A DNA stretch of 64,000 nt from Rebecca billardiae RCC1528. Its lineage: Eukaryota > Protista > Haptophyta. The position numbers and the translations under genes are program-made. The notes below the pieces were generated by a model, which saw nothing but the letters and a program-made list of their open reading frames with translations, was not told the origin of the DNA and made no database searches. Below, piece after piece: positions 22,520 to 54,968 of this stretch. Numbering within the stretch: position 1 is the stretch's first letter; each line of letters begins with the position of its first letter. The stretch covers positions 310,001 to 374,000 of the forward strand of contig OZ251241.1 in NCBI GenBank assembly GCA_965240325.2, in the 5' to 3' direction.

Positions 22520-23626
22520 CAAGGGTAGTAAGGGTGAGCAACTCCGCTGGCGACAGCCGCGAAGGTCGGCAGCCCTCTGTTTGCCGCGACGGCGGAGCGG
22601 AGCGAGTGCTATCAGCGGCGGAGGGCGCTGAGGCCGCGCACGGCGTGAGGCGCGGCGTCGGCCGAGTCGGTCCGCGGAGGATGCGCGGCGCTCGGCCCGC
22701 TGCGCAGCGGCAGTGCGCCTCACTTTGCCCCGAGCGCCGTCCGCCGCGTCGCCTCCTTCCCGCCTTGGAGCAGCACGCATGTGCGCGCCGCCACCTTGAA
22801 GGCGGCACGGGCTTGCTCAGACGACCGCGCGCGCGTGGCGCGCGACTTGGTCGGCTGCGCGCGCGCGCCGCCGCGGTGCAAGGTAGCGCCGCTGCATGCG
22901 CGCGCCGTGCCAGCGCGAGAGCGTGTGCGCGGACCTGAGTGCGACCTCACACACATGTCGAATGCTGCTTGGCATCCGACTTGCGGACTGACGGGAAGCT
23001 GGAAAAGACAGCGGCGTGAGTGTTGGTACCATCGATGCGGAGCCTTAGCGTCCACTTGCATTCGTGCTGAGAAGGAATAGACAAGACTAGGCCTTCGTCC
23101 TGGGTATCCAATGTCACTCAACACCTCGCTGATCGACCCGACGAGTGCCAGCGTGAGGCACAGCAAATCATTCGTGAGAGCAAGCAGACAAGCGAGCACC
23201 ACGCTCATGAGATGGCCGTGAGCAAAGGCTCGCGCGGGCACGGCGCGCGCATGTGGTGGCGCTACCTTGCACCGCGGCGGCGCGCGCGCGCAGCCGACCA
23301 AGTCGCGCGCCACGCGCGCGCGGTCGTCTGAGCAAGCCCGTGCCGCCTTCAAGGTGGCGGCGCGCACATGCGTGCTGCTCCAAGGCGGGAAGGAGGCGAC
23401 GCGGAGGACGGCGCTCGGGGCAAAGTGAGGCGCACTGCCGCTGCGCAGCGGGCCGAGCGCCGCGCATCCTCCGCGGACCGACTCGGCCGACGCCGCGCCT
23501 CACGCCGTGCGCGGCCTCAGCGCCCTCCGCCGCTGATAGCACTCGCTCCGCTCCGCTCGCGGCAAACAGAGGGCTGCCGACCTTCGCGGCTGTCGCCAGC
23601 GGAGTTGCTCACCCTTACTACCCTTG
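22520..23626. mobile_element. Foldback non-autonomous DNA transposon FB-1 (long TIRs, 7-bp TSD)
   Basis: Inverted arms 22520-22919 and 23229-23626, nearly identical, with a 309-bp spacer. Ends CAAGGGTAGTAAGGG...CCCTTACTACCCTTG. GCCTAAC directly repeated at 22513-22519 and 23627-23633. Confidence 0.85.
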
Positions 23627-23839
23627 GCCTAACCACCCGAGTGTAAAGCAAGGCCATCAGGTCTCCCGCGAGAGGCGGTGGCACCGGAGGTGACTGCCGC
23701 GGCGGCCGCACCCAGCCCCGCGCGTGCCGGCCCCGCCGCGTGTGCGCGCGTGCCGCGGGCCGGCGCTCGTACGCGCTCACACACCTTGCGTCGCGCCCTC
23801 TGGCCCGCCTGCTCCTCGCGGCAGCGCGCACCGCGCACG

Positions 23840-24785
23840 ATGACAGCCAGCGGAGAAGAGAGCTTGTACGACCTGCTCGGGGTCGACCGCACAGCTAGTA
23901 AGGGCGAGATCCGGAGAGCGTACCACAGACTCGCGGTTGTGTGCCACCCCGATAGGCACCCGGAGGACGAGCACGCGCAAGAGCGCTACGACGCACTGCA
24001 GCACATCAAGGTGTGCGCGCGTGCACCACTTTCCTCGCCCTGCCTGGTCGCTGAGCGCGCGTTCGGCGCGCCGTGTGCGTGCGCGCGGTCCGGCCGCGGC
24101 CGGCGTCCCGGCGTCGCAGGCGTGTCTGCTTGACGACGAGAGACGGGCGATCTACGACGAGACCGGCATCATCGACGAGGAGGACGGCTTTGATGCGTCG
24201 CAGTTTGAGGGCGAGCCGTTCCGCGCCCTGTTCGAGTGGTTCGGCGAGGCGGAGAGGGCAGTCGAGGCGGACGAGGTGCTCGTGGACGAGTTCGAGGTGG
24301 AGTACCGGGGAAGCGTGGACGAGCTCGCCGACCTCGTCGCCTTCTACCTGCAGTTCGGCGGGCGGATGGACGGCGTTGTCGACTACATCCCGTATGCGGA
24401 CGACTCCGACCTCGCACGGTTCAGAGCGATTCTTGACGACGAGATCAGCGGCGGCAGGCTGCAGCCGACAAAGGCGTACCGCGCGTTCGAGCCGCCCGAC
24501 GGGCCAACGACCGCCAAGGTCGTCGCGCGCGCCAAGGCCAAGCTGGCTGCGGCGAAGCGCGCGCGCGCGTCCGCGCTCAAGGCGGCCGAGGAGGCGGAGG
24601 GCCCCCCGGCAGATGTGTTCGCGCTCATCCAGGACAGGCAAGTGCCGCGCGACAAAGTGGCGGTCGTCGCGAACAGCAACAACAACGCGGACGCCGTAGA
24701 GACCTCCAAGAACGCCAAGAAGGAAGGGAAGGCCGCCGGGAGGGGCCTTGGCAGCAAGAAGAGCAAGGCCAAGGCGGCGGCCTAG
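23840..24785 (+). CDS. DnaJ-domain protein, DNAJC9-like (exons 23840-24010 and 24120-24785)
   Basis: LYDLLGV...EIRRAYHRLAVVCHPDR (HPD motif). A GT-AG intron at 24011-24119 joins to LLDDERRAIYDETG...FEVEYRGSVDELADL..FY....G.M (DNAJC9 pattern). Confidence 0.85.
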
Positions 24786-25123
24786 GCGCACAGTCCGTCA
24801 CTCAGCATCGGAAAGATTCGATTGCTGGTGGCGCGAAAGCTGCGCACGGGCGCGGACGCAGGCCTGCGCCCCAATAAGTTATTCACTCCGGTCTTGCGTC
24901 GCCTCGCGAGAGCGCAGCTGCTCGGCGTGGCGCGCGGCTGCGGCACACGTCGATCGATGTGCCATCCTGAGCGACCAACGGTGTCCGTGCGGGGCGCGGG
25001 GCACGTCGCGGCGCTGCTGCCACGGACGGTCCGCGGGACTTTGAGCTAGGGCTTAGGCAAGCCATATCAGATACGATGATGCATTAGTTAGGTGCCAGCA
25101 AGCCACATCATGGCGATCGACAT

Positions 25124-25125
25124 AT

Positions 25126-25170
<45 letters not shown>

Positions 25171-25176
25171 TATATA
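25124..25176. repeat. (TA)n/(TACA) microsatellite
   Basis: Direct inspection. Confidence 0.9.
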
Positions 25177-26884
25177 CAGGGGTCTCAACAATTCACTGAA
25201 ACGTCACATTCTGACTGAGCTGCACGCCACTGCTCACCCTGCCCCCCTGGGCTGATCCAGGCGGCCCCCACGGCCCGTGCACGACGGTTTCGACCCAGCG
25301 CGTCAGCCCCAGCGCGCGTGGGCTGGAGTTGGGCACACCAGCAGGTCACACGGCTGCAGGCGTACAGCCTGTCGCAGCTGGCCAGATCCTGCCGCAGGCT
25401 TGTCGTCACTGGTCGCGGGCAGTGTGCCCACACAGACCAGGCCTAAATTGTGCTTGGCAGTGGATCTGGTACCCCCTAGGGAGGGCTGCATGCCACATGG
25501 GGGGGAGCTCATGGGATGCAGCTGCAGTGGCACAGTGCCCAATCCCGCGCCCCCACCTGCGCAAGGACCTGTCGCGGGTCAGCTCCCCTGCACTGGGAGG
25601 CCAGCAGCAGCACCCGCTGACACACCCAGAGGGTGCGGCCAGCCACCCGACTTGAGGGGGCTGGAGTGGGGCTGGTGCAGCCAAGAGCTCTGCAGCCTAG
25701 CTGCTGGTGGCTGGCCTGCATGGATTTTCAAGCTGACCACCCACTGCTGCCTGCCGCACCCGGCCTCGCTGCACCCACCTGGGCTGCTGCACATGCTCAA
25801 TGCGCACTCTGGATTGACCAAGGGCGCGAAAGGGGGTCGCTCGCTAAGCCCCACCCGCTCCGGCCAGCATGGCTGCCTGGCCGGCGGCGGCGTGCTCAAG
25901 CGAGCCGTAAGCCGGGAATCCACGCGCTGGCGGTGCGGTTTTGGCGGCGCAGGTGGCCTCGCAGGTCGCCTGCAGGTATGCTCAGAGCCTTAGGACAGGT
26001 TGGTGGCCCCCAACCCCAGGCTCCTTGTCGCTGCTTGCCGACTGCAAGCGATCACGCGTCGACCGTGCAATCCCGCGTGCACGCGGCCCAACGTAGGGTG
26101 CTGCACATGCTAGCAGATGGTGAAGGGGGGTCGCCCGCCACGCAGACGTCCTCGGAGAGGACGTCGACCCCCGTGCGTCGTCTCGATCCCGACCTCTCCA
26201 GCCCAGGCTTGCGTGCTTCCTAATATGCAATGACATACGAACAACCATAGGCATTTCAAAATGTTATCTCGACTTTTGGGCTAGAACTTCACATTGTCCG
26301 TGGCTCTCTGGGCAGCAGGCCTTCAGCGACTCCTTGCGGGACAACGCCCAATCAAGGCGACGCACGGGGGTCGACGTCCTCTCCGAGGACGTCTGCGTGG
26401 CGGGCGACCCCGCTTCACCATCTGCTGGCATGTGCAGCACCCTACGTTGGGCCGCGTGCAACGCGGGACCGCACGGTCGACGCGTGATCGCTTGCAGTCG
26501 GCAAGCAGCGACAAGGAGCCGGGGTTGCGGGCCACCAAGCTGTCCTAAGGCCCTGAGCATACCTGCAGGCGACCTGCGAGGCCACCTGCGCCGCCAAAAC
26601 CGCACCGCCAGCGCGTGGATTCCCGGCTTACGGCTCGCTTGAGCACGCCGCCGCCGGCCAGGCAGCCATGCTGGCCGGAGCGGGTGGGGCTTAGCGAGCG
26701 ACCCCCTTTCGCGCCCTTGGTCAATGGCACCACAGCCCAGCATGGAGAGCTGGCCAAGCAGCCACCCACTCGTCAGAATGGCCAGGGAGTGGGCTGTGCT
26801 AGACCACATCTAGCCAGGCAATCAAGTGCTCACATGCCTGTCCAGCGGCACAAACAGAGATACAGCTAATTGTTGAGACCCCGC

Positions 26885-26887
<3 letters not shown>
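25177..26887. mobile_element. Tc1/mariner-type non-autonomous element inserted in (TA)n, carrying nested FB-2
   Basis: TIRs CAGGGGTCTCAACAATT (25177) and AATTGTTGAGACCCCGCCTG (to 26887), with TA repeats on both sides. No transposase ORF. Confidence 0.7.
25819..26719. mobile_element. Foldback element FB-2 (same CAAGGG-terminus family)
   Basis: Inverted arms about 25819-26187 and 26351-26719 with a spacer of about 163 bp. Ends CAAGGGCGCGAAAGGG...CCCTTTCGCGCCCTTG. Confidence 0.8.

Positions 26888-26967
<80 letters not shown>
26888..26967. repeat. (TA)n microsatellite, about 40 units
   Basis: Direct inspection. Confidence 0.95.
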
Positions 26968-26970
<3 letters not shown>

Positions 26971-28666
26971 ATGACAGTGTTATAATTATAATATTACTAT
27001 ACTGAGCGCAGGACGCGGCTACGGAGGCGATGGGGGCCGCGCGCTTGGGCCGCTTGAAGTCCAGTGCGCTACCGGCCACTGCATGTATATACGGCTGCGA
27101 GTTAATTCTCCTGCTGCTACTACTGCGCGCGGCCGCGGTACCTAAGTCACGCGCTATTAAGTATAAGCAGTGGTCTGATCAGCTTTAGCTTAGTAGGTCC
27201 AACGCACCAGGCCGGCAGCGGCCGCGGCGCGGTCACTTAGCACTCAATTAGCAGACTCAGTCAGTCAGCACCGGGACGTTTAATAAATTCGTTTAGGCTT
27301 ATAGCTTAATTCCAGGGTGAAGAATCCGCCTGTGCCAATTTGAATTTCAGATCGTCTGATCGACTGCCAAAATGTGATCTATCATAGGGCTCCGCGGTGC
27401 GATTCTGGTACAAATAGCGAGATCACCTTGATGGAGATCGTATATCTCCACTACTAATGTTGCCGAGATCGCGTCAGAGATTCGGAGGTCGTATATCTCC
27501 ATAGCGTATGTTTATATATAAATTATGTGACGACATTTTTTCGTCGCAAAACTTGTCGTCAGCGTGACCCCAGGTCATTATTATTTTAGGCGCGGCGAAT
27601 ATTATTGACATCCCGAAGTTTGCCAGAGCCTCATCTCAATCAAGACGACTCCGACACAAAGTTATATTGGATTTTGGGCCATGCACACACGACCCCACAC
27701 TGGCCATGTTGGGGCTCTGATGACCCCGCAGCCTCTACTATATATATTCACTAGCTAGAGAGAGAGAGACTAGAGAGAGAGAGTAGTAGTCGCGTATACT
27801 ATACTGTTACTGCTGCGTAATAATAACACCTCCGTATATATAGTAGTAGCTAACGACTGCTATACGTACTGCTATAGTTATAGTATATAGTTCTGATGAT
27901 GCTGCGTCTCGGACTCGGTATCGGCGCCAGCGCCCCGAGTACAGGCAATCGCGGGCAATAAGGAGCTGTCACGTTAAGAAACTGGGGCTTGCTATCTGCG
28001 GATCTGGCCTAGAAACTGAGACTAGCGATTGGCTGGTTCGCTATACGCATAGTCACACTAAGAAACCGGGACTATGTCGTCGCGGCTGACGAGTGGTCCG
28101 CCGCTGAGGCGCAGTGCCCATGGGACCGGCGGCGCGCGGCCCGACTACGAGTACAGGCCAAGGATTCCCGACGACTTCTCCTGATGACTGACTCCTGCCC
28201 CTGGCCAGTGCACCGCAGCATCCATGCAACATCATGCCAGATTTGCTCCAAAATGGCCCAGCATCAAATGTTTTCTTCGGCCTCGCCGGCCGGGCCTAAA
28301 GACTCAGCGGGGGCGGCTCAGCCCCCCTGCACCCCCCGCGCCTGCGCGGCGGGCGGACCTAGCTAAGAAACTGAGACTCCGTAGGCGGTCGGGCTACCGA
28401 ACGGCTATAAGAAACCGAGACTAGCCGTGAGATCTCTGACTTCTTATATACTACTTATTGCCCGCGATTGCCTGTAGCGTCATCATCGATTCCGTCCGAT
28501 ATCGACTACGCTGGCTCGTCAGATCGTCATCTATATTCTATCCCTGGCCCCGGGTATCCCGGGGCGCTATATAGCGCTAGCTACTTAAGTGCCGACGAAA
28601 GGGCAAAGGCGCGCGCGCTTAAGGAGCGGATAGCGCATCCGATGATCAGTAGACAGTGCAGCCGCA

Positions 28667-31033
28667 CTACTGCTCTGCTGACTCCATATCGTCCATCTGT
28701 GCCTGCAGCGCCTCGATGCGCCGCGTGAGCTCGGACTGGACGTGCGTGTGCTGCTCGACAGTCGCGCGCCGGTCGACGAGGCTGACCTCCGCCATGTAGT
28801 CGACGCGCGACGTCGACGTGATGGCGGGCAGCCGCCCGCTGCTGCCCGCCGTCTGCACCGACGGCCCCTCAGACCGTCGCGCAGCAGGCTTGGGCGAGGG
28901 CATGCCCCGAGGCGAGCGGAGCGGCTCGTCCTCGTCGTCGGTGTTCCCGAACGCGCCGTTGAGCAGCACCGACTCCTCGAGGGCCACGCGCGTGCGCGAC
29001 TCGTCCGGCGCGCCCTCGTCCGGCGCGCGCGTCTCGCGTGTCGCCACGTCCGTCAGCAGCGACTCGGCGCGCGACGGCAGGACTGGGTCGAAGTGGTCCG
29101 CTGCCTGCAGGGCCGCGTCAGAGCCTAGCCTCAGGGCCGCCGGGCCCGCGTTCGACGCCGAGCGCGCAGACTCAGCGGTGCTCGCCGTGGTCGCCGCCGC
29201 GCCGGTCGCACGCGCGCCACCCGCCGTGGCATGCGCATCGTCAGGAGGCGCGCCGCCCTTGGCCGCGCGCGACGACGACACGCGCTCGAGAGCCGTGTTG
29301 GCCGCAGCGGCGTTGGTGGCGGCCGAGGGCTCCGAGCCACGCCGCTCGGAGCCACGTCGCTTGGCGACGGCCGGGGAGGACTCGGCGCCCGCGCCGCCCC
29401 GGGCGGGCGGGCTCGCCGTGGGCGCCGCAGGCGCGCCATCCGACGGTGCCTGCTGCTGCTGCTGCGGCGGCGGCGGCGGCACGGCTGGCACAGAGGAGCG
29501 CTTGCGTGCGAGCCGGCCCGCCGGCGCAGAGGCAGAGGCGGTCGCCGCGGCCGCGCCACCCGGCTGCGACGTCTGCACGGTGGCCACGAGCGAGGCGCGG
29601 CCTTTGCCCACCGCCGGGAGCTTGGCGCCGCCGGCGGGCGCCGTGCCGTGCATCGGCTTGCCCTCCTGCTTGGCGGCCGTGCCAGCCGGGGCGGCGCGCG
29701 TCACGCGACGCTCCGGCCAGCCCGGCTCGTGCGTCGCCCATGGGCGCGGCGGTGGCGCCGGCGGCAGCGGGTGACAGCCGGGGAGCGCGAGGTGCGGCAT
29801 GGCGAGCGCGCGCGCGAGGAGCGCCTCGGCGCTCAGAGCCGGCTCGCGCTTCGCCCCGCGCCGCGCCGCCGCGCCCTTGCCCCCCTGTGCCCCCGCCGAG
29901 CCGCCCACGCCCCCCTCCTGCCGCCCGGTGCCGTCCGCCGGGCGGCCACCATCGGGCTCCGAGCCGAAGGAGGCGTGGGCGCGGACGGAGGAATCCATCG
30001 ACGTGGCGGCGAACTCGAGCGAGCACTCGACGCACACGCCGACGGCCTGCTGCAGGAAGTACGGCGACGACTCCTTGCGCAGCCGCTTGTACTTGCCGCG
30101 GTTGAGCGCGATGCCGCCGAGCTGCGGCGCGCCGCCCGCCGCCTCGGCCGCCGCCTGCTCGGCGCCCGCCGCCAGCAGCGCATACACCGCCTCTTCAAGC
30201 GGGTCGTCCAGCCGGTCGTCGAGGTAGTCCGAGTCCGGGTCGGCGCGGCGCGAGCGGAAGCTCGCCGCGCCGTTCGCGCGCCGCGCGTGCGAGCCGAACG
30301 AGCGCGAGCCCGCCGCGCCGAAGACAGCGCGCGCCTCCAGCTCTCGGTCCCACTGCCGGCGCGCGCCGCCCGCCGAGGTGAGCGCGGTGCGCGCGGAGCC
30401 GTGCAGCGAGCGGCGGTGGGTGCCGCTGTCCACGCTGTCGGCGACGGTCGCCATGTCCGACATGGTGATGGCGGAGCCGGCGACCGAGCTCTGCCGCTTG
30501 AAGCCGAGCAGCTGCCCGTCCGCGCCGCCGCCCCCGCTGTGCGAGCTGCCATCCGCGCTGCCGCTCGCGCCCTCGCCGCCGTCGTCGACCAGAATACCTG
30601 GCGCGCCCGCTGCCGAAGCTGCCTGGCCGGCGCCCTTGCCGTGCGAGTAGGACAGGCGGCGCGAGAGGCGCTCCTTCTTGCTGCGCAGCTTGCGCTTGGG
30701 CGCGCCGCCCGCGCTGCCGGCGAGGAGCGCGTCGGCGCGCGAGGTGAGCACATCGAGCTGGCCCACCGCTCCCTCAGTCAGGAGTGCGGGCGCGGGCGCG
30801 GCGCTCGGCGCGGGCTGATGGTCGGCGGGCATGGCGGCGGCCGCGGCGGGAGCGGAGCTGCCCGCCGGGTCGTCGGTAGCGGCCGAGGCGGCGGGCGCCG
30901 ACGCCTCGGCAGCAGCGGGGCCATCGGCAGCCGCGGCTGGGCTCCCTTGCCCCTTCGAACGATCGGCGATCAGCGCGTCCACCGACCTGGGCCCGGCCGT
31001 GCGCTCGGCGCCGCCGCCGGCCCAGCTCGGGGA

Positions 31034-31080
<47 letters not shown>

Positions 31081-33226
31081 TGGCATCCGGCCCGACGCCG
31101 AACACGGCGGCAGCGGCGTTGGCGTCGCCCAGGCTCGCGCCGCCGTCCGCGAGCATCCCGTCCGGCACCTCCGCGTCCGTGTGCGGGCCGATCGACGGCG
31201 CGACCCTCGAGAGAAACGCCACGGTGCGCGGCACGTCCGCGGTGCGAATCGAGAGCTGGCCACGCCGCTTGGGGGAGGAGGCGCGAGCGCCGCCGCGCGC
31301 GGACGCGACGCTCGGCGTCGGCGGCACGGCCGGCGGCGCGGCGTCGGGCGGGAGGAGCGTGAGCGCGCTCGTCCTTGCCGGCGCGTCGCCGCCGCCGCCG
31401 CCGCCCGCCTCGTGCGCCGCGTCCTCGCCGACCGCCTCGTCGTCCGCGCCGCCGCCCGCGCTCTGCAGCGCGGCCGCGACCGTGTGCACGTGGGTGATCG
31501 CGGTGGCGTAGCTCACCTCGCAGCGCCAGGTCGACCGGAACACGTTGGCGCAGACGGGGCAGCGGTAGTACGTGGGCGGCAGCCGGCAGAGCGGCGAGAA
31601 TTGCGGGTCCTGCCGCGAGCGCGCGCGCGGCCGACGCACGGCGGGCGGGGTGGCGGCGGGCGCGCGGCGTGAGCGGCGGGCGCGAGCGCGCAGAGGCGCG
31701 CGCGCGGCGCGCGCCGTGCGCTCGCGCGCGGCGCGGCGCGCTCGCGCACCCGCGCGTGCGCCGTGCTCGGCCGCCGCTCGTTCGGGTGCACCAGCTCGTC
31801 CACGTCGACGCGCGTGAGCTGCAGGTCGGGGCAGTAGAGGAAGCGCAGCGAGCCGTCTGCCGAGGGCGCGTAGTAGGAAGTCATCGAGTGCACGCGGTAC
31901 TGCGACGGGAGCAGCGCGTTCACGTGGCGCTCGAGGGACGCGGCGCAGCGCAGGGCCTGCCGGCGGACGGAGGACTGCGGCTGCAGCTCCACCAGCCTCG
32001 AGCCGTGCGCGTGCCCGTCGAAGGTCGCGCACCGGTCGACGAGCGGCAGCCGGCGGTTACTCAGGTGTGCGTGCGCGACGCGGTTCTCAATCGTCGTGAG
32101 CGCGCCGGACTTGACCGCGCGCACCACGGTCGCGCGCCCGCCGGGCGGCGGCTCGAACGTCTGCAGCAGGCCGTTGTGCACCTTCTGCCGGTTGTAGATG
32201 AAGTCGCGCAGCGTCTCCTGCGCGGTGGACGGCGCGCGCGGCGCGTGCGAGGGCGCGGGCGAGTGCTCAGCTCAGCAGCGCGCGAGAAGCCCACGCCGTG
32301 CCGGCCACCCCTTGGCGTGCAGCTCGGCGGCCCGATCGCGCGCGGCGGGCACGCTCGCGCCCTCTCCGTGCGACAGGCACGCCGCCCCTCCGCCCCGCCC
32401 GTTGGCGCGCCGCGCGTGCGCGCGTGCGCCCTCCGCCCGCCCTCCGCCCGCCCTCCGCCCGCCCTCCGCCCGCCCTCCGCCCGCCCTCCGCCCGCCCTCC
32501 GCCCGGCCGCACCTCGTCAAAGTACTCGGTGACGACGCGCGCGCGCGCGGTCGAGCCGGCGGGCGGGAGGACGGTGTACACGTACAGCGCGCAGACGTCG
32601 CTCTTGTGCGCGCGCGCCGCGTCGCGGAACGCGCGCATCACCGCGCCCGGGTCGATCCCCTCCGACTGCACGAGCTGCAGCGCGCCGGACCCGTCTGAGG
32701 CCGGCTGGTACCAGCAGTGGGGCCGCATGAAGCGGAAGGTGACGGTCTCGGCGCACTTGACGCCGGCGGAGGTGCGCGCGCTGGAGGTGGAGATGTACCG
32801 GTACAGCTCCTCCAGCCACGACACGTGCTCCACCGCCGCGCCCATCGGCACCTTCGTCTTCCGGCTCGCGGCGGCGAGGCCGAGGCCTTCCATGAAGTCA
32901 AACACACCCTCCTTGTCGCCGTCGAGCGCGCTGAGCTCGTGCACGTACGCGTTCTGGGTGCGCGGCTCGGAGAGCTGGCGCCGCTGCGACACGCTCCCGC
33001 CCGAGCGCGAGTCGATCCGTCGGCCCGGCACGATCGCGCTGTCGCGCTCCTGCATCACGCCGCGGTACCGGCGGAACGACGCCGTCCCTTCCGGGTCGAC
33101 GCGGCTCTGGCGGTCGCCGGCCGAGCGCGCGCCCACCCGCGCGGACGCGTCCATCGTCGTCGACGCGAATGATGCGCGCGCGCCGCCGCCGTGCTGCGCT
33201 TCGGGTGGCGGCGCTTCCGTCGCCAT
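28667..33226 (-). CDS. Large uncharacterised protein, 3 exons (33226-32513, 32217-31750, 31609-28667)
   Basis: Phase-0 GT-AG introns at 32512-32218 and 31749-31610 join three ORF segments in frame (VVTEYFDE|ETLRDFIYNRQKVHNGLLQTFEPP...|DPQFSPL). Cys motifs CPVC and VCVEC; low-complexity C-terminus. Confidence 0.7.
32428..32504. repeat. 11-bp intronic minisatellite (GCCCTCCGCCC)x7
   Basis: Tandem copies just inside the 5' end of intron 1. Confidence 0.9.
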
Positions 33227-33500
33227 GCGCCGTGGACGCCTCGCCCCTACCACGAGCGTGGGCCCATAGCCATCGTCATGGCCACAGCTTATGCAACACA
33301 CCTCCGGAGTGCCGGCGAGTAACAGCTCGCGCGCGCCGGACTCTCGCCGCCGCGGTGGCAGAAAATGGTTCGCGTTTTTTTTTTGGTGGCGCGATTGGGC
33401 GCGAAGCTCAGGGGCGTTCCCCGCATCGGTCATACGCCAAATTGAACCGTCTTCCTATTGGAACGGGCTTCGTCCATTTGAAGCGGGTACATTGAATACG

Positions 33501-33539
33501 GAAAAAGGCAAAGCCCCCCCAGGGGGGGCTTTGCTTTTC
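33501..33539. promoter_or_regulatory. Palindrome in divergent promoter
   Basis: GCAAAGCCCCCCC-A-GGGGGGGCTTTGC (33508-33534), extended by GAAAA/TTTTC, between starts at 33226(-) and 33644(+). Function is inferred only. Confidence 0.4.
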
Positions 33540-33643
33540 GGGAGCGTGTGGCAGGATCCCGGGAACGCCCTTGCTCGGCGGCACGCTTTCAGCTTGCCGA
33601 GCGAGCGCCGAGCGGCGGCGGTCTCGGACGCGCCGCACGAGCC

Positions 33644-35210
33644 ATGTCGATCTCCCGCCACGCGCTGCTGGGCGCGGTGCTCGCCGCGCTCGCGTGGGGC
33701 GGCGCGCACGCCGTCGTGGCCGGTGGGCGTGGCGTGCGCCGGCCGGTCGGCGCGCCGCGCGCCGCCGTGCGGCAGGAGGCCACCGCCGTGTCCGAGTACA
33801 ACTCGATTGCGTTCGACAAGGTGGTGATGCGCACGTACAACCGCTTCCCGATCGCGATGTCGCGCGGCGCGGGGTGCGAGCTGTGGGACACGACGGGCAA
33901 GCGGTACCTCGACTTTGCGGCCGGCATCGCCACCGCCTGCCTCGGCCACGCGCACCCCGCGCTCTCCGACGCCATCGCCGAGCAGGCGAAGCGCGTCTGC
34001 CACGTGTCCAACCTCTACTACATCCCCGAGCAGGGCGAGCTGGCGGCGGAGCTGGTGAAGCGCTCGTTCGCGGACAAGGTGTTCTTCTGCAACTCGGGCG
34101 CCGAGGCGAACGAGGCGTCGATCAAGCTCGCGCGCAAGCACGCGCGCACTAAGCACGGCATCGAGCGGCCGGTGATCGTCTCGGCGGTCAACTCCTTCCA
34201 CGGGCGCACGCTCGCCACCATCGCCGCGACCGGCCAGCCCAAGTACCAGGCGCCTTTCCTGCCGATGCCGGTGCGCGCGCGCGCGCGCGCGCGCACGCGC
34301 ATGCCGAGTGGGACGCACGCCCGTCCTCGCCGCCACGCGCGCGCCCCCTGCGCTCGCGCTCCGCGCGCCTCTCATCGCGCGCGCCCTCGCCGCCGCGCGC
34401 GCGCCACCGCGCGCGCGTCTGCGCCGTGCCTCGCAGGAGGGCTTCGTGCACACGCCGTACAACGACGTGGACGCGCTGCGCAAGACGATCCAGCGGCTGG
34501 AGCGCGCGCCGCCCTTCGGGCTGCGCCGGCGCAAGCGCCTCGCCGCCATCCTCCTCGAGCCTCTGCAGGGCGAGGGCGGCATCACGCCGGGCGACAAGGC
34601 CTTCTTCCAGGCCGCGCGCGAGATCTGCGACGAGAAGGGTGCGCTGCTCATGTTCGACGAGGTGCAGACGGGCGTGGGGCGGACGGGGACGTTCTGGGCG
34701 CACGAGCAGCTCGGCGTCACGCCCGACGTGCTCTCCTGCGCCAAGGCCCTCGGCGGCGGCGTGCCCATCGGCGCGATGATGTGCTCGGACGAGGCGGACG
34801 TCTTCGCGCCGGGCGACCACGCGACCACGTACGGAGGCAACTTCCTCGCGTGCGCGGCCGGGCTAGCGGTCGTGCAGGAGATGGAGCGCAGCCGCATCCT
34901 CGACAACGTCAAGGCGCGCGGCGAGCAGCTGCAGTCCAAGCTGCGCGCGATCGTCGGCGAGTCCAACGGCGTGCTCACCGAGGTGCGCGGCATGGGCCTC
35001 ATCGTCGGCGTGCAGCTCGGAGACGCGGCGGGCGTGAGCGCGGCCGAGGTGTGCGGCGCCGCCTCGCGCCTCGGCCTGCTGCTGGTGCCGGCCGGCCCGA
35101 TGGTTGTGCGCTTCGTGCCGCCGCTGGTAGTCAGCGAGGCGGAGGTGGATGAGGCGGTGGACATCTTCCAGGCGGCGCTTGCCTCCGCGCGCGAAAACGC
35201 AAAGGCCTGA
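33644..35210 (+). CDS. argD: Acetylornithine aminotransferase, plastid-targeted (exons 33644-34270 and 34437-35210)
   Basis: YLDFAAGIATACLGH, FFCNSGAEANE, SFHGRT, EPLQGEGG, FDEVQTGVGRTG, AKALGGGVPIGA (PLP Lys), HATTYGGN. Intron 34271-34436. Signal plus transit peptide. Confidence 0.92.
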
Positions 35211-36187
35211 ATGGCGCCGCCAGACGATCGGACCCGAGTCAGAGTGGCCCGGCGCAGCGCGTCGGTGCGAGTGGCTCCCACCCGGTCTCAGGGCCGACAG
35301 CCACTCCCATCTCCACACTCCGACCACGACCTTCACCCGGTCTTGCACTCGGACTGCCGGAGGCAATCGCCACCCTCGCCGACCTGCTACGAGTTTGGCC
35401 GCGACTCGGCGCGAGTTCGGCGGCTTCCGCAACTCGGTAGTCGGTGTCGGCGGCCCTGTGGCGTGTAAGTGTCTGCACGGCCCGCGTGTGGCGTGTAAGT
35501 GTAACTCCGCCGCCCTGAGCGGTGAGGGGCCTACGCAACGACTCACGGTCGTTACTCATTTAATAAGCTATATATATCATCATTATCGTCAAGTACTTTT
35601 ATTAATTTATGGCGCACGGCCCCCCCCCCGAAAGGTCTGAGCGTGAGCGAAAGCCGGGGGGGGGCGGCGCACGTGCTCCGCAAAATCAAAAAGAGGATGC
35701 GCGCAGGATTTTGGGGATTTTTCGGTAGGTGGCCACCGCGTATGAGTGGATATCGCTGCCGCAATGATTGCGTTTGTAGTAGATGCTAATTTTAACGATA
35801 GTAACACTTAGGGGAATGCAGGGTGGAATAGCACATAACACCAGCCGTGTGTTAGAACATTCCGTCATAGTAAGATGCCTGAATTGTAAGAGCCTGAAAC
35901 AGCTCGCCAACCATAGAAACGATAGGTTGGGTCGTCAGCTTTGATTCACGCGCTTCTGAAAAACAGCGTTTTAGATTAGACGCATCCCTCTTCTCTTAAG
36001 AGAACTGCGCTAGAATAGTGTGGTGAGTGTGTCCTGGACAGCCTGAGCGGAAAGGTCAATAATCACGGTTGTGATTCAAGATTCCTCACCCCGTATTGCC
36101 AACTGATTCAAAGCCAATGCGGGTATGAATCGACGCGTTTGTGCTCTATCTGCGATCAATAAGAGCTCTCTGATTCAAATGGGTGTA

Positions 36188-44581: not shown

Positions 44582-45003
44582 CTCTCACGACGTACGGTCC
44601 TACTGGTCGATAACACGACTCTCACTTGGTCAGGCGACTGCTACTACTTACTAGTACCGTACACTCTACAGTGAGCCGCGCGGGCCCGGGCTGACCGCGC
44701 GCACCGCCGGGCGCGGCTGCTGCCACAAGTCACGACTCAGCGCCGGACGATGACCGGGACCGGGACTCAGTCCGACAGCTGCGTGGCAGGCCGTGACCGA
44801 CGTGAACGGTGAATCCGACTCCGAGCTTTGAAGCACTTCATCACTGCTCGTCCGACTGGATGGCGCGGCTGCTCGCTGCTCGTGCGCCGCACCGCCGCCA
44901 CCGCCTCCGCCGCGCTCTCGTGCGCGGAGGCTTGGCGCCGAGTCCTTCGCGCGCGAGCTCGAGCTTGCACGCGCCTGGGACGCGCGCCCGCACCCCGCAC
45001 GTG

Positions 45004-46339: not shown

Positions 46340-46340
<1 letters not shown>

Positions 46341-46383
<43 letters not shown>
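46341..46383. repeat. (TA)n microsatellite abutting duplication copy B
   Basis: Direct inspection. Confidence 0.95.
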
Positions 46384-46386
<3 letters not shown>

Positions 46387-47276: not shown

Positions 47277-47738
47277 ATATATATAATTTCTCGCCACTGA
47301 TTATTAAATATATCGGCGGACGCCATCGCAGACGGTGACGAGAGTCAGATACCAATTGTATGCGCGCGCAGACGAATACGATGAACGGCCGGTGAGAGCC
47401 CGCTGAGATGCATGCAGCATCATGGCGGCGGATGCGCCATGCGGAGCGGCGCTGCCACAGTCAGCCAGCAGCGCGGCCCGCACGGTCCGGCTCAGGTTCT
47501 AGTCCTCGCCGCATGCAACGGGTGCATGTGTGGATCTCAGCGACGACAGCTCGAGCCGACGCGCCGGCCATCCCATCAGCCACCCACACCTGCTCAAGCG
47601 CGCAGCCGGCTGCCGTACCTGCGTACGGTATCGCCTGATCGGTCTGCCGTGCACGGCGCCAAGCCGCTCAGCTCGCGACGCTGTGTGCAGCCTTCGCTGC
47701 GCGACTTGTTCGGACGTGTGGCCGGGGCGTGGCGGCGG

Positions 47739-48812: not shown

Positions 48813-48983
48813 GGCGACTCCGCCTGTGGCGCGCCCTCGCGACCGGCGACGACGAAATGTCTGGACCGCGGCAGCCCTCCTCGGTCGCTCGGCTCCGCCC
48901 AATGACGATGGATGAGTACCAGGAAACGGCCGCATTCCGCCCACTGTGGGCGCCGCGGCGGCGTTGTAACGTCATCATTCGGA

Positions 48984-50276
48984 ATGGGCGCGCGCGATGG
49001 CGGGACCCTCCGGGCACTGGGGACGGTGCTTCTGGCGACCGTGGCAAACGAAATGGCGCGCGGCGAGCCACGCGATCCGCACGCCGAGCATCTAACGCGC
49101 GCAGCGGTCGCCGCCTCCACGGGCGCCCCCGCCCTGTTGTATGAACGCGACGACCACGCGTGGCTGGCGACCGCGCGTGGCGACTACCTCGCGCTGGCCG
49201 CTGAGTTCAACAGGCACAGCCTGAACGCGCGCGGCGCGGCGCACAGCGAGTACACGCCGGCCGTCGCAGACGGCCCTGCCGCGCGCATGCACTACCTCAG
49301 CGGCCGGCTCGCGTGCTACTTTGGTCACGCCGCGAACGCGACACGCTCGCTGCGCCACTCGCTCAGCCTCGAGCCAGCGCAGTTCAGCGTGCACGTCACG
49401 CTGGCGAAGATCGCGCTGGGTCAGGGAAAATGGGAGGAGGCGCAGGAGGCACTCGCTGGCGCGATGGCTCTCGAGCCGCGCCACTGGCAGCCGCAGTTGC
49501 TCTGGGCATACGCGCGCCGCCGCGCTCGCGCGCATCGGGATGCGCGCGATGAGGCGGCGGAGCGCGCAGCGTGTGCGCACCTCGACGCGGCTGCGAAGCA
49601 CGGCATAAAGGGGCCGGCGCGTGGGCTCGCGCGCGTGTGCACGGAGCGCGGCGCGCTGCCGCCCGCCGACGATCCGGAGCTCGGCCCTGCAGCGGACGCG
49701 GACGCCGCGCACGCAGCGTTTGCGCAGCACAAGTATGCGCTTGTGCGCGCACTGCTGCCGTCCAGGCTGGCACGCACCGTGCGCGCGTGGCTCGCGCACC
49801 TGCTCAGGAAGGAGCGGCGCGAGCCGGGCTCGGCCGCGAGCTTCCAGCCAAAGTCTGGCCGGTGGGAGCTGCACCCCGAGCCGCTGAGCACGCTCCTGAA
49901 CTGCCTGCTTGCCGAGTGGGCCTCGGCTGCCACGGGCGAGGACCTCGTACCCACGTACCCGTTCCCGATTGCTTACGAGCGCGGCGGCTCCATACACCCG
50001 CACCTGGACGTGGAGGACAACAACATCTCGCTCACGTACCAGGTGGCGATTCGGCCGGCAGGCGCGGTGTGGCCACTCTACTTCCTCGACCCACGCGGTG
50101 CAGACCTGACCGCGCTCGACGCTTCCGATGCGCACGCTCTTGCGCTTGCAGACAACGATGGCGTGCTGTACCGCGGGCCGCAGCTGGTGCACTGGCGTGA
50201 GCCAAGGCAGCTCAACCTCACGCAGGTCGTCTTTGGCTTTCGGCGCGTCGACGAGAACTCGTGCAACAACCAGTAG
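48984..50276 (+). CDS. TPR plus 2OG-Fe(II) oxygenase-like protein, probably secretory
   Basis: TPR helices (SLSLEPAQFSVHVTLAKIALGQGKWEEA...AMALEP), then LVPTYPFPIAYERGGSIHPHLD (HxD)...WPLY...DGVLYRG..LVHWREP. Confidence 0.75.
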   Translation: MGARDGGTLRALGTVLLATVANEMARGEPRDPHAEHLTRAAVAASTGAPALLYERDDHAWLATARGDYLALAAEFNRHSLNARGAAHSEYTPAVADGPAARMHYLSGRLACYFGHAANATRSLRHSLSLEPAQFSVHVTLAKIALGQGKWEEAQEALAGAMALEPRHWQPQLLWAYARRRARAHRDARDEAAERAACAHLDAAAKHGIKGPARGLARVCTERGALPPADDPELGPAADADAAHAAFAQHKYALVRALLPSRLARTVRAWLAHLLRKERREPGSAASFQPKSGRWELHPEPLSTLLNCLLAEWASAATGEDLVPTYPFPIAYERGGSIHPHLDVEDNNISLTYQVAIRPAGAVWPLYFLDPRGADLTALDASDAHALALADNDGVLYRGPQLVHWREPRQLNLTQVVFGFRRVDENSCNNQ

Positions 50277-50742
50277 TATGCGCGTACTCGTGGCAAGCAG
50301 CCACCCGTCGCATCATCGCTCTGCGGCACCCAGACGATGGATGACGACAACGCGACGCGCGCCGCCGTCATATTTCGTCACGCAGCGTCGCGTCGGCGGC
50401 TCCGGCATGACCGGATGGCAATGGCGCGACGCGCGCGGCCATCATGATCATATCAGCAGCAGTCTGCGACTGTCAAAATGATGCGTAGCGACGATGTAAC
50501 TACGACTACAGTAGTTACTGCTGATGATGTGTCTCACGCTGAGTGAACCGTGAGTGACGAGCGGCCCCGGACTGGAGCAGCCTGCGGCGGTCGAGTGTCG
50601 ATCTTGGCCGGTATGTGCCGCCCGATCACGCTGCTGATCCCGCGCGGTCGCGGAGCCCGTAGTGCACTAGAATCACTAGATGCTGAGCTGATCGTACCGA
50701 TGCCGCCCCGGGGCCGGGCCTGCTGCTCATCAGCTTCAGAGA

Positions 50743-53700
50743 TCATGCTGCTTGCTGCTGCTGCTTGACGAGGACGCTGATGACCGCCGCTTGCTGCTCG
50801 AAAGCGCGGAGTGCCGCGGCCGAGACGACACCAGCGACCGCGCAGCCGCGCCCGTCTTCGACGGCGTCAGCGGGCTCGGAGGCACTCGCGCCGGCCGCCG
50901 CCTCAGGCAGCGCCCGCGTGCTCGGAGCCGGATCAGAGTCGTCCGCGCCACCGCGGTCGTCTTCCTCCGCGCCAGGCGCGAGCTGCGCGACCAGAGCGGC
51001 AGCCTCGGCCGCGAGCGTGCTGGCTGGACGGCGCCGCGCGGCCGCGCCAAGCGCGCTGCGCTCGAGGTGCTCGACGAGGTGCGCGCACAGCGCTGGCGAC
51101 GCTCGCGTGCGAGCGCGCACGCACGCGAGCTTGGCGCTCAGCGTGCGGACGGTGCGCGCACTCGCCGGCAGCGCGGCGAGCAGCGCGCCGAGGCGCGCGC
51201 TGACGAGCGCGTCTGGCGCCGGCTGTGCGACCAGGGCCTTGGCGGCGTCCGCAGCGAGGGCGGCGACGTGTACGCCGTCGCTCGCCGACTCGAGCGTGGG
51301 CAGCGCGCGCTCGAGCACGCCGGCGAGGTGGTTGCCCACGCTCGAGCTCGGCTCGAGGCACGCGGCGAGCAGCGCGCGGCACAGCGCGCGGCCCACGCCA
51401 TCGTGTGCGCTGATCGTCTCGAGCACGCGCGTGCCCCGCTCGACCACGCTGGGCTCGGGGTCTGCCAGGGCGGGCAGCAGCAGCGACACGACCGGCCGAC
51501 AGCGGCGCACGCTGAAGAGCGCCTCGAGCAGCTCGAGCGCGCGCACGCGGCACGCGCCGCCCACGTCCGGCCCGGCCGGCAGCAGCGCTCGGTACAGCAG
51601 CCGCTCAGACTCGGCGTGGCCGAGCGCGCCCAGCTCGGCGCCGACGTCGAGGAGGCCGTGCACCGCCTCGATGGCGGCGAAGCGAACGCAGGCGTGCTCG
51701 GACGGGCGCTGCAGCACCGCTGCCAGGGCGCGCTCCGCCGTCGGATCGTAGTAGCGGTCCTCGGGCGCCGCCTCGGCCCAGCTCTGCAGCAGCGCGCCGA
51801 GCGCGCGCGTCGCGGCGACGCGGCAGCGCGGGTGCGAGCGCTCGTCTTCGAGTGACGAGGCGAGCAGCCGCGAGGCGGGCGCGCACGCGCGCTCGAGGTG
51901 CGCGCGCAGGGTCTCGCGCGCGCCCTTCTCGCGCTCGAGCCGCGCGATCTCCTCGCTCATGTAGTCCTCGTCCTCCAGCCCGCCGCCCACGTCGGCAGCG
52001 TCAGCGGCGCATGCGCCCACGCCTTGCGCATGCGCGCGCGCGCCGGTGCCGGCTGCCGCGTCGGCACCCGCCTCCATCGCGCCATCGACGGCGCTCGGCG
52101 CGCTCGAGATGAGCGCGAGCGCGGCGCACACGCTCGCGGACACCTGGCCGACCGCGGTCAGCAGGTTCGCGTGGCAGCGGCTCGCGGCGCGGCCGTCACC
52201 GTCTGCCAGCGCCTTGGCGGACGTCGCCTGCCTCCCGATGAAGCCCGCCAGCTGGTGCGCGACGCACACGGCCGCCTCCATCGCGAACGTGGCCTCGGGC
52301 GCGTTCGTCGCGGCGGGGATGGCGTCGAGCGGCGCGGGCACCGAGCAGCGCATGCACGCCCACGCCAGCGCCTCCGCCGTGTGCTGCGTCTCCCACGCGT
52401 CCATGCGCAGCAGGAAGCGCGCGGACGCGTGCAGGTGCAGCTCCCGCGCGATGGCGGCCGCGCTGCCTCGCTCGTGACACGACGCGGCCACGTGCCGCGC
52501 GAGCGCGAGGCCGAGCCTGCGCGCCTCGGCGTCCGGTGAGGCGCACGCGCCGAGCGCGAGCTGGCCCGCGCGCGAGAGCGTGGGCGGCGCGACGTCCGCC
52601 GCCTCGCAGCGCACGAGCAGCTCGAGCTCCGCCAGCCCAGCCGCCAGCGCGGCCGCGCTCCGGGGCTCGGCCGGCTGCGGCTGCTCGGGCGCGCTGCAGA
52701 GGCTCTCCCGCTCGAGCTGGTGCACGAGCTGCTCGACGCGGTGCTGCAGCAGCGCGGAAGGGCACTCGCGCAGCACGACCCCGGCGCCGTGCGTCACCGA
52801 GCGCGAGCGACTCGCGCGCACCGCGCCGGCCAGCGCGCTGACTCGCCGCGTGCGATCGACATGCGCCACGAGCGCGCGCCTGCAGTCCCGGCTCGTCACC
52901 GCGCCGCCCAGCAGCTGCGCGACGGCGTGGGAATGGAGGTTGGCGCGGCCGAGCACGCCGACGACCCGCCCGCGCGTCTCCTCGTCGGTCACCGCCGACG
53001 GCGCGGGCAGCAGCATCTGGATCAGCGCGCCGCTCATCTGCTCCGGCAGCGAGCGCTGCTGCGGCTCCAGCCGAGGCAGCGCGGCGCTCAGCGCGTCCAG
53101 GCACGCGACGCGCACGGTCTTGCTGGCCGAGTGCAGCGAGGATGCCTCGCGCGAGAGCTCGGTGAGGAGGAGCGACAGCGTCTCGTCGTCCCCGACGGCC
53201 GCGGCGATCGTGCCGAGCGAGGCGACGTACGGCGCACGCACCGTGCTGTCGACGCTCGCGCTCAGCGCGCAGTGCAGCGTGACGAGCGCGCGCGCATGCG
53301 CGGCGCCGTCCGCGCAGCTGCGGGCGGCGAGTGCGGCGGACGCGTCGATGAGCTTGCGCTTCGCACCGCCCTTCTTCGGCAGGCTGCCGAGCACGTCGCA
53401 CACGTGGCAGATCACCGGCGTGAGCGCGAGCGTGTCGATCTTGGTCGCGAGCTGCACGAAGAGCGCGCCGAGCAAAGTGCCCTGCTCGGCGCTACCCGCG
53501 ACGATCTCGCGCAGCACGGCGTCGAGCAGGACGTACACGCCGGCCAGAGTCTGCGCCGACACGTCGGCGGCGAGCGCGACAGCCGCCTCGACGACGCACT
53601 CACTGAGCGCGTTGGCCTTGGCACGCGAGAGCGCATGCACGACGCGACACACGTCGTCATCGCCCGCGGGGCGGCGCAGGAGCGCCGTGATCTCGCGCGT

Positions 53701-53781
53701 CGCCGCGTCGCGCTGCGCCTTGCTCAGCCGTCCGCCGTCATGCGCAAGCGCCGCCTCGACGGCCGTCGTCGCCGTCGCCAT
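50743..53781 (-). CDS. Large HEAT-repeat protein (possibly condensin non-SMC subunit-like)
   Basis: 1012-aa ORF with HEAT motifs (SKTVRVACLDAL, SPDAEARRLGL, LADPEPSVVERG). Specific family is a guess. Confidence 0.6.
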   Translation of the reverse strand: MATATTAVEAALAHDGGRLSKAQRDAATREITALLRRPAGDDDVCRVVHALSRAKANALSECVVEAAVALAADVSAQTLAGVYVLLDAVLREIVAGSAEQGTLLGALFVQLATKIDTLALTPVICHVCDVLGSLPKKGGAKRKLIDASAALAARSCADGAAHARALVTLHCALSASVDSTVRAPYVASLGTIAAAVGDDETLSLLLTELSREASSLHSASKTVRVACLDALSAALPRLEPQQRSLPEQMSGALIQMLLPAPSAVTDEETRGRVVGVLGRANLHSHAVAQLLGGAVTSRDCRRALVAHVDRTRRVSALAGAVRASRSRSVTHGAGVVLRECPSALLQHRVEQLVHQLERESLCSAPEQPQPAEPRSAAALAAGLAELELLVRCEAADVAPPTLSRAGQLALGACASPDAEARRLGLALARHVAASCHERGSAAAIARELHLHASARFLLRMDAWETQHTAEALAWACMRCSVPAPLDAIPAATNAPEATFAMEAAVCVAHQLAGFIGRQATSAKALADGDGRAASRCHANLLTAVGQVSASVCAALALISSAPSAVDGAMEAGADAAAGTGARAHAQGVGACAADAADVGGGLEDEDYMSEEIARLEREKGARETLRAHLERACAPASRLLASSLEDERSHPRCRVAATRALGALLQSWAEAAPEDRYYDPTAERALAAVLQRPSEHACVRFAAIEAVHGLLDVGAELGALGHAESERLLYRALLPAGPDVGGACRVRALELLEALFSVRRCRPVVSLLLPALADPEPSVVERGTRVLETISAHDGVGRALCRALLAACLEPSSSVGNHLAGVLERALPTLESASDGVHVAALAADAAKALVAQPAPDALVSARLGALLAALPASARTVRTLSAKLACVRARTRASPALCAHLVEHLERSALGAAARRRPASTLAAEAAALVAQLAPGAEEDDRGGADDSDPAPSTRALPEAAAGASASEPADAVEDGRGCAVAGVVSAAALRAFEQQAAVISVLVKQQQQAA

Positions 53782-53860
53782 CCGAGCAAGAAGGGCGTGG
53801 GGCAGCCGAACGCGTTCGTCCTCGAGCGCGCCCAGGCTTTGGTGCTCGCTTTGACTTGAC

Positions 53861-54968
53861 CAAGGGAGTCAAGGGTGCCCGCGCCCCAGTGGCGCGCTCG
53901 GCGGATGTTGGGATACACCTTTTTGCCCGCGGCCTGCGGCGGGCGGCGGCGAGGGCGTGCTCCGCTGGCGGGGCGAGCGCACGGGGCACGGCGCTGCGGG
54001 CGCGGATGTGCCCGCGAAGCCGGCGCGTGCAGACGGGCTGTTGCGGGAGAGTATTCGGCGCCCTCCTGCGCCGCGCGACTTGCGCCACGCCTCTTTCGCC
54101 TCGGCTCAGAGCAGCGCGCACGCTCGCGCCGCCTCAAGGCCAGCCTTGCCGCGCCGCAGCCGGCCGGCCGCGCGCCGTGCGCGGCGCGGTCGGGAAGGAA
54201 CGGGCGCTGCTGCCGGGCGAGATGGCAAACGCATGTGCGCACGCCATGCCGCCCCGCGGCGCCGCGAAAGAGCACGAGAACGGATCCGCACAGCTGTTGA
54301 CGAGTGCTGATCACTTGTCGTGCACGAAGCCAGACCTGAGCTCGCAGAAGATGATGAAAGAGCATCAGCGCGAGGAAAGCGTCGCACCCAGCACTTCTAC
54401 ATGAACACGCGGTGATGAACATGCATGTAAGAGTAGCCCGCGTGCCCGTCTGGCACTATTCTGTGTCTCAATGATCGTCCCAACAAGGGTCACGACCGCG
54501 CAGCCGTGCACACCATTTGTGACAAGTCGAAGAGGCATGCAAACAGACCGACGACACGCTCATCAAGGCGCCGCGGGGCGGCATGGCGTGCGCATATGCC
54601 TTTGCCATCTCGCCCGGCAGCAGCGCCCGTTCCTTCCCGACCGCGCCGCGCACGGCGCGCGCGCGGCCGGCTGCGGCGCGGCAAGGCTGGCCTTGAGGCG
54701 GCGCGTGCGTGCGCGCTGCTCTGAGCCGAGGCGAAAGAGGCGTGGCGCAAGTCGCGCGGCGCAGGAGGGCGCCGAATACTCTCCCGCAACAGCCCGTCTG
54801 CACGCGCCGGCTTCGCGGGCACATCCGCGCCCGCAGCGCCGTGCCCCGTGCGCTCGCCCCGCCAGCGGAGCACGCCCTCGCCGCCGCCCGCCGCAGGCCG
54901 CGGGCAAAAAGGTGTATCCTCACATCCGGCGAGCGCGCCACTGGGGCGCGGGCACCCTTGACTCCCTT
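53861..54968. mobile_element. Foldback element FB-3 (same CAAGGG-terminus family)
   Basis: Inverted arms 53861-54263 and 54567-54968 with a 303-bp spacer. Ends CAAGGGAGTCAAGGG...CCCTTGACTCCCTT. CTTGAC repeated at 53855-53860 and 54969-54974. Confidence 0.85.

Follow-up and report, generated by a model that had tools for sequence, protein, structure and literature searches.

Three long foldback elements, designated FB-1, FB-2 and FB-3, lie within the 64,000-nucleotide stretch of Rebecca billardiae RCC1528 contig OZ251241.1 that was analyzed here and that we refer to as the window. Inverted-repeat detection and sequence reading recovered all three at the coordinates, and with the arm and spacer lengths, that an original prediction made from the sequence alone had assigned to them. 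(TA)n tracts aside, no other inverted repeat in the window reaches 60 nt at more than about 87% identity. The elements, their parts and the short sequences on either side are listed below, with the target-site duplication abbreviated as TSD.

22513-22519, forward strand: left TSD of FB-1, GCCTAAC, read directly
22520-23626, unstranded: FB-1, complete foldback element, 1107 bp, from CAAGGGTAGTAAGGGTG to CACCCTTACTACCCTTG, as defined by the inverted repeat and sequence reading
22520-22919, forward strand: FB-1 left arm, 400 nt, 75% GC
22920-23228, forward strand: FB-1 spacer, 309 nt, 57% GC
23229-23626, reverse strand: FB-1 right arm, 398 nt
23627-23633, forward strand: right TSD of FB-1, GCCTAAC, read directly
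25813-25818, forward strand: left flank of FB-2, ATTGAC, inverted on the other side and not directly repeated
25819-26719, unstranded: FB-2, foldback element, 901 bp, from CAAGGGCGCGAAAGGGGG to CCCCCTTTCGCGCCCTTG
25819-26187, forward strand: FB-2 left arm, about 369 nt, 69% GC
26188-26350, forward strand: FB-2 spacer, 163 nt, 53% GC
26351-26719, reverse strand: FB-2 right arm, about 369 nt
26720-26725, forward strand: right flank of FB-2, GTCAAT, reverse complement of ATTGAC
53855-53860, forward strand: left TSD of FB-3, CTTGAC, present as a single CTTGAC in the empty-site contigs
53861-54968, unstranded: FB-3, foldback element, 1108 bp, from CAAGGGAGTCAAGGGTG to CACCCTTGACTCCCTT
53861-54263, forward strand: FB-3 left arm, 403 nt, 77% GC
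54264-54566, forward strand: FB-3 spacer, 303 nt, 55% GC
54567-54968, reverse strand: FB-3 right arm, 402 nt
54969-54974, forward strand: right TSD of FB-3, CTTGAC

The arms of FB-1 are 98% identical to one another, with five substitutions, one 2-nt indel and an outermost 70 nt that are the same on both sides; those of FB-2 are 97% identical (11 differences, all at or past arm position 168), and those of FB-3 98% identical (eight substitutions plus the terminal base). A single strand of FB-3 folds to a near-perfect hairpin of ~400 bp with a computed energy of -720 kcal/mol as DNA. Tandem-repeat analysis (TRF) found trivial micro-repeats of 2-3 copies in the arms, which otherwise consist of unique sequence. 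The fixed geometry that had been proposed for the three elements describes the homologous pair FB-1 and FB-3 and does not extend to FB-2, with its 369-nt arms and 163-nt spacer.

Direct evidence for mobility comes from a site that lacks FB-3. Proteins encoded on either side of the elements were looked up in public assemblies, which led to Logan short-read contigs from two runs, ERR14847148 and ERR14847151. One contig from each (L003, 7.6 kb, from ERR14847148; L004, 6.8 kb, from ERR14847151) begins inside the Dis3 gene, crosses the intergenic region and continues past a gene for a 1012-amino-acid protein, matching the window at 55988/55127-54969 and 53860-47247 with 99.9-100% identity. The two matching blocks share exactly six bases, CTTGAC, and position 53860 is joined straight to 54969. 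The single CTTGAC at the joined site identifies FB-3 as a precise 1108-bp insertion accompanied by a 6-bp direct repeat. The element and one copy of the repeat are absent from both contigs without an excision footprint, which marks the site as an unoccupied target, and elsewhere the two contigs match the window across 6.6 kb at 99.9% identity or better. Overall divergence of the Logan contigs from the window is below 0.1%, with a shared 2-bp indel and a few other variants, and the read sets represent a near-identical haplotype or strain, slightly unlike the assembly. Since such a haplotype lacks FB-3, the insertion is young; the family has moved recently, and its polymorphism between near-identical genomes implies an active transposase. 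The individual variants are a 2-bp deletion at 47514-47515 in both runs, a 2-bp deletion at 47329-47330 and a single-nucleotide polymorphism at 47315 in one run, and a 1-bp deletion at 22278, upstream of an amino-acid transporter gene.

The same samples that carry the empty FB-3 site contain FB-1. Its left junction is present in two contigs (L001 and L002) and its right junction in a third (L005), and all three end 23 nt into the FB-1 arms, at window positions 22542 and 23604, which is the behavior expected of a de Bruijn assembler at an inverted repeat. Recovery of both FB-1 junctions from these samples argues against assembly artefact, and against a polymerase skipping the hairpins, as general explanations. 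Exact look-ups of open reading frames (ORFs) gave no match for FB-2 in the Logan samples. Elements of this type break short-read contigs ~23 nt inside their arms, a point of some relevance to assembly quality control, and may be under-reported in such assemblies.

The three elements are joined by their ends. Five of the six element ends read CAAGGG-N4-5-AAGGG, and the sixth, the right end of FB-3, which terminates in ...CCCTT without the final G, is short of the outermost base only. The motif is confined to element ends: CAAGGG-N3-6-AAGGG occurs five times in the window, each time at an end, against 0.01 occurrences expected. About one turn of the helix separates the two AAGGG repeats, and the conserved double-AAGGG module is a likely binding and cleavage site for a transposase. 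On the outside, the sequence YTRAC adjoins the left end in all three elements, and YTRAC followed by CAAGGG occurs four times in the window where 0.01 occurrences are expected. CAAGG/CCTTG is also about 4-7 times over-represented in the arms, and recurs at a homologous position inside two of them (FB-1 ~22794-22804, arm position 275-285; FB-3 ~54135-54148, arm position 275-288). As a weak hint, these internal copies may be secondary transposase-binding sites. The window is without a match to any transfer RNA (tRNA) or Rfam family, and both a structured RNA family and a tRNA target were rejected on this basis.

Taken together, these data indicate that FB-1, FB-2 and FB-3 are very probably class II DNA transposons of the cut-and-paste type, non-coding and non-autonomous, with a foldback or 'two-TIR' build in which two arms of about 370-400 bp enclose a short unique spacer and nearly the entire element consists of terminal inverted repeats (TIRs). 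The prediction of non-autonomous mobile elements with very long TIRs and a common terminal module is thereby borne out, its mobility component through the FB-3 empty site. Among the features by which class II elements are recognized, conserved TIR ends are present, FB-3 provides both a target duplication and an empty site, FB-1 provides a perfect duplication, and FB-2, with its inverted flanks, lacks a direct one. Judged against published descriptions, they most likely constitute an undescribed family of a familiar kind and not a new kind of element.

Several observations weigh against this interpretation. A uniform 7-bp TSD had been predicted, and FB-1 does carry a perfect 7-bp duplication, but TSD length varies among the copies: FB-3 has 6 bp as defined by its empty site, and FB-2 is without any direct duplication. 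The FB-3 junctions have to be explained either by a 6-bp stagger, with the terminal G missing, or by a 7-bp stagger, with 2 bp lost at the junction. ERR14847148 and ERR14847151 may derive from one culture, in which case the empty site is replicated technically and not biologically. A polymerase could in principle skip a hairpin between short direct repeats, yet FB-1 was not skipped in the same libraries. Finally, neither a transposase nor an autonomous copy was found, the three copies all lie in the 64-kb window, and protein-space searches and a metagenome motif scan gave no further copies beyond it.

Searches of the elements themselves gave no sign of a recognizable protein. No ORF inside FB-1, FB-2 or FB-3 has a Pfam match. 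An ORF in the FB-3 arm gave no match at E<=0.001 among 5.8 billion proteins, and one in the FB-1 arm, searched against 1.84 billion representatives, gave just two matches, both weak, broken into several stretches and confined to short segments of long proteins. Identity between the FB-1 and FB-3 arms by codon position is 59.5/61.1/56.6%, and divergence without codon periodicity rules out coding arms. Being non-coding, the elements require mobilization in trans; domain searches of the window proteins detected no transposase domain in the 64 kb. A blastn search with a word size of 9 revealed no other full or partial copies in the window. Scanning metagenomes for CAAGGGNNNNAAGGGTG-N11-14-TGGCG returned at least 120 loci; among the matches listed none has an inverted partner, the best being mismatched at 11 of 40 positions, and the loci listed are regarded as chance matches and not as copies of the family.

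Arms of different elements had been described as unrelated apart from their termini. This is correct for FB-2, which shows no similarity to FB-1 or FB-3 past the first ~16 nt (z<1 against GC-matched controls), and incorrect for FB-1 and FB-3, which are collinear homologues. Global alignment of the latter pair extends across arms and spacer in the same orientation with few gaps. With 200 GC-matched real segments of the window and the reverse complement as controls, the arm alignment scored 149, whereas the segments gave 41.7 +/- 19.4 (maximum 93) and the reverse complement 37. For the spacer, the alignment scored 12, against -58 +/- 15.5 (maximum -20; z=4.5), exceeding all 200. The arms are 58% identical between the two elements and the spacers 50%. 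The near-equal size of FB-1 and FB-3 (1107 and 1108 bp) consequently reflects common descent and not independent constraint, and the proposal that size and architecture are constrained while arm sequence turns over loses its premise, which was that the two elements are unrelated.

Homology between FB-1 and FB-3 allows the history of the arms to be read from a four-way alignment. Across 390 ungapped columns, 227 are invariant among the four arms. In 150 columns the arms agree within each element while FB-1 and FB-3 differ, and within-element differences number only five for FB-1 and eight for FB-3. The excess of between-element over within-element differences (150 versus 5 and 8) shows that the arms were homogenized long after the FB-1 and FB-3 lineages split. 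The FB-3 empty site adds a second constraint. Between the flanks of FB-3 and the empty allele the difference is under 0.1%, whereas the FB-3 arms differ from each other by 2%, so that the arm mismatches predate the insertion and were inherited from a donor copy; arms are therefore not rebuilt from one arm at each transposition. From these sequence comparisons, occasional arm-to-arm conversion appears a better explanation for the likeness of the arms than regeneration at every jump. Mismatches between arms number 5, 9 and 12 in the outer, middle and inner thirds, a trend that is not significant. With very deep divergence between copies and 98%-identical arms in each, these elements illustrate cleanly how long TIRs evolve in concert in nature.

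A mechanism compatible with these results can be outlined. A transposase encoded elsewhere in the genome would bind the terminal double-AAGGG module, cleave at the CA...TG ends and integrate the element with a 6-7-bp stagger, probably with a preference for open intergenic DNA. Conservation would be needed only for the last ~16 bp of each end, and with so little conserved, old lineages such as FB-1 and FB-3, at 58% identity, and FB-2, which cannot be aligned with either, could still be mobilized. Recurrent arm-to-arm conversion, as opposed to regeneration from one arm at every jump, would keep the arms alike. Of moderate general interest here are concerted TIR evolution across very diverged lineages that are still mobile, and the inverted 6-bp flank of FB-2.

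Which superfamily supplies the transposase can be approached by analogy with described systems, and on that basis we rank hAT-like elements (hAT6, hAT7 or haptophyte hATv/Shanks) as the leading candidate, ahead of P/Galileo-like elements and then other superfamilies. Classic hAT elements, with an 8-bp TSD, are excluded at FB-1 and FB-3: the 8-mers flanking FB-1 (CGCCTAAC and GCCTAACC) mismatch, those flanking FB-3 do likewise, and the empty site of FB-3 gives 6 bp. Groups of hAT elements with 5-, 6- and 7-bp TSDs have been described, including hAT6 (6 bp) and hAT7 (7 bp) (PMC12730594), and the 6 bp of FB-3 and 7 bp of FB-1 fall within the 6-7-bp range of hAT6, hAT7 and hATv. Shanks, a haptophyte-only hATv family of Tisochrysis lutea, has a 7-bp TSD, 26-bp TIRs and proteins without a Pfam match, and its non-autonomous copies, 0.5-3 kb in size, have been found moving in culture strains (PMC10138859). 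It differs from the present elements in that its 26-bp TIRs are non-identical, as compared with arms of ~400 bp here. A Shanks-annotated deletion in the supplement of that study reads TAGGGCGG... after a 7-bp repeat, an apparent element end that is loosely like CAAGGG but not the same (PMC10138859). The TIRs of hAT elements in general are normally 10-25 bp, against ~400 here, and no hAT-type protein was found in the window. The end sequence CAAGG would fit (C/T)A(A/G)NG, a pattern of hAT ends for which a literature check gave nothing usable.

Assignment to the P/Galileo type, in which a THAP-domain P-like transposase moves foldback derivatives that end in CA...TG and produce 7-bp duplications, was the favored interpretation of the original prediction. 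It rested on a uniform 7-bp TSD, the length typical of Galileo as opposed to the 8 bp of P elements, and 7 bp is present at FB-1 only; the label was premature, and we now consider the assignment unlikely, although it is the best surviving of the alternatives. Galileo elements have TIRs of 0.3-1.2 kb, 7-bp TSDs, 'two-TIR' derivatives and diverged subfamilies (PMC3573991). The likeness is closest to Galileo 2T of Drosophila (P superfamily), whose non-autonomous copies are nearly all TIR and which shares CA...TG-type ends and the 7-bp TSD seen at FB-1, and the ~400-bp arms and almost all-TIR build of our elements conform to it (PMC3573991). Several diverged subfamilies likewise coexist in one genome there, and copies without matching TSDs occur (PMC3573991). 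In contrast to Galileo, FB-3 has a 6-bp duplication and FB-2 none, the arms lack internal tandem repeats, the host is haptophyte-like, and no P or THAP transposase was found in the window. Divergence between copies is also greater, with 58% identity here as opposed to about 77% between Galileo subfamilies, and TIR length has been stated to be an unreliable classifier (PMC3573991). Moreover, a 7-bp TSD is not diagnostic of this group, as it is found in hAT7 and hATv as well (PMC12730594; PMC10138859). Among other superfamilies, IS3EU has a 6-bp TSD, TIRs of more than 30 bp and ends of the form TAYGG..CCRTA (PMC12730594). The duplication at FB-3 and the length of the TIRs are similar, but the ends here are CAAGG..CCTTG, and no IS3-type transposase was seen.

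The flanks of FB-2 call for a separate explanation. The inverted repeat that includes ATTGAC and GTCAAT runs from 25813 to 26725 and ends exactly there. Because inverted repetition of the flanks is limited to these 6 bp at FB-2, an extended palindromic target around the elements was rejected. The right duplication may have been destroyed when the element was cut at its right end only, with repair templated by the left arm then running six bases into the left flank; the same repair would homogenize the arms. Alternatively, FB-2 may have arisen by inverted duplication around a single end. The first idea can be extended to the whole family. A transposase reading only the ~16-bp double-AAGGG module would leave the interior free to change, cuts at one end would be repaired off the other arm and restore arm identity, occasional overshoot into the flank would produce both the inverted flank of FB-2 and better-kept outer arm segments, and new foldback families could originate from a single end. 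We regard this extended scheme, from end-module recognition to the birth of new families, as doubtful, a shade more so than the P/Galileo assignment. If true, a small, compact algal genome would offer a tractable system for studying how foldbacks are born and how their symmetry is maintained.

Much less probable is the possibility that the elements are immobile host hairpin loci, such as palindromic duplications or long-hairpin RNA genes that serve small-RNA or promoter regulation. Near-perfect ~400-bp hairpins, strong co-variation of the FB-1 and FB-3 arms and the placement of two of the three elements in divergent promoters would all suit such loci. Presence and absence of FB-3 with a target duplication, together with the TSD of FB-1, are nevertheless signatures of insertion, and no Rfam match was obtained. 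The two ideas are in any case compatible, as inserted hairpins could yield small interfering RNAs as well.

Slightly less credible again is a Mutator-like (MULE) or Drosophila-FB-type foldback family. Long TIRs and a location upstream of genes are common for Mutator-like elements, and the Drosophila Foldback (FB) and Tetris elements resemble ours in their long inverted arms, short middle and mostly non-coding copies. The arms of Drosophila FB and Tetris are made of tandem subrepeats, unlike the unique sequence of the arms described here, and Drosophila FB has a 9-bp TSD, unlike the 6-7 bp found here. The 9-11-bp duplication expected of this group is absent: 9-mers flanking FB-1 and FB-3 mismatch and the empty site gives 6 bp, which excludes a duplication of that length at both elements and disfavors the MULE-like alternative that the prediction had allowed. 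A link between foldback elements and Mutator has been reported (PMC3169594). Least plausible are foldback chimeras of long reads. Such an assembly artefact would explain the absence of FB-3 from both short-read contig sets, but the recurrence of both FB-1 junctions in independent short-read contigs effectively refutes it for FB-1. Nor could a read chimera have given rise to FB-3, whose sequence is homologous to FB-1 yet diverged, whose ends are those of FB-1, whose unique arms and spacer bear no relation to the flanking DNA, and whose duplication measures exactly 6 bp.

The genomic positions of the elements are informative with respect to their possible effects. FB-1 and FB-3 each lie mid-way in a divergent promoter region of about 450-480 bp, next to the following genes.

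21017-22246, reverse strand: amino-acid transporter gene
about 23840-24785, forward strand: DnaJ/DNAJC9-like gene
55348-58374, forward strand: Dis3/Rrp44 gene

FB-1 is 273 nt from the ATG of the transporter gene and about 210 nt from the DnaJ ORF, and FB-3 is 79 nt from the ORF for the 1012-amino-acid protein and 379 nt from the Dis3 ATG. With two of three copies in the middle of divergent promoters, the elements could alter gene expression and could serve for tagging. All three copies are intergenic and their right ends do not end in AG, and introner-like elements, which sit inside genes and bring or form splice sites, were rejected on these grounds. Between the transporter gene and FB-1, the promoter region contains an 11-nt tandem repeat, TGGGCAGCCGA, in 2.9 copies at 22390-22421. 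FB-2 lies within a 3.9-kb stretch without genes, bracketed by an imperfect (AT)27 at 25122-25176 and a perfect (TA)40 at 26888-26968. To its right, positions 26900-27900 are ORF-free and have a GC content of 37-46%, as compared with 70% for the window. This AT-richer stretch may represent an island that is prone to recombination or free of nucleosomes, or else what is left of a different element.

The host was predicted to be an alga, and the window agrees with an alga-like eukaryote whose genome is GC-rich, gene-dense and mostly single-exon. GC content is ~70% along its whole length, and long, mostly uninterrupted ORFs with ordinary eukaryotic domains fill it; further products include a family-A DNA polymerase, an aldo-keto reductase, Mpv17, and RAP and ARM proteins. 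The nearest named relative of the Dis3 protein is from the haptophyte Prymnesium parvum, at 52% identity, and unnamed marine sequences reach 62%. In its style the genome resembles that of the pavlovophyte Diacronema lutheri, which is described as 73% GC and 61% coding, with 45% single-exon genes (PMC8379373). Among the classified repeats of that genome, only long terminal repeat and long interspersed nuclear elements were reported (PMC8379373). For haptophytes of this Pavlovales-like, extremely GC-rich type, there is essentially no description of DNA transposons.

Four ORFs of 600-1100 amino acids are without a Pfam domain above the gathering cutoff (28667-32032, reverse strand; 10438-12678, forward strand; 33455-35281, reverse strand; 50743-53781, reverse strand). 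They may be lineage-specific genes or, less likely, unrecognized element proteins. Among them is the 1012-amino-acid ORF, for which the Logan contigs give the same call and which shows a weak HEAT match only. A 1.4-kb contig, possibly a transcript (L006; JGI 3300016936, Ga0186282_102917), carries a DNAJC9-like gene that aligns with window positions 23839-24631 at 76% nucleotide and 71% protein identity. It points to a related species in public data, in which an orthologous empty site for FB-1 might be found if genomic sequence exists.

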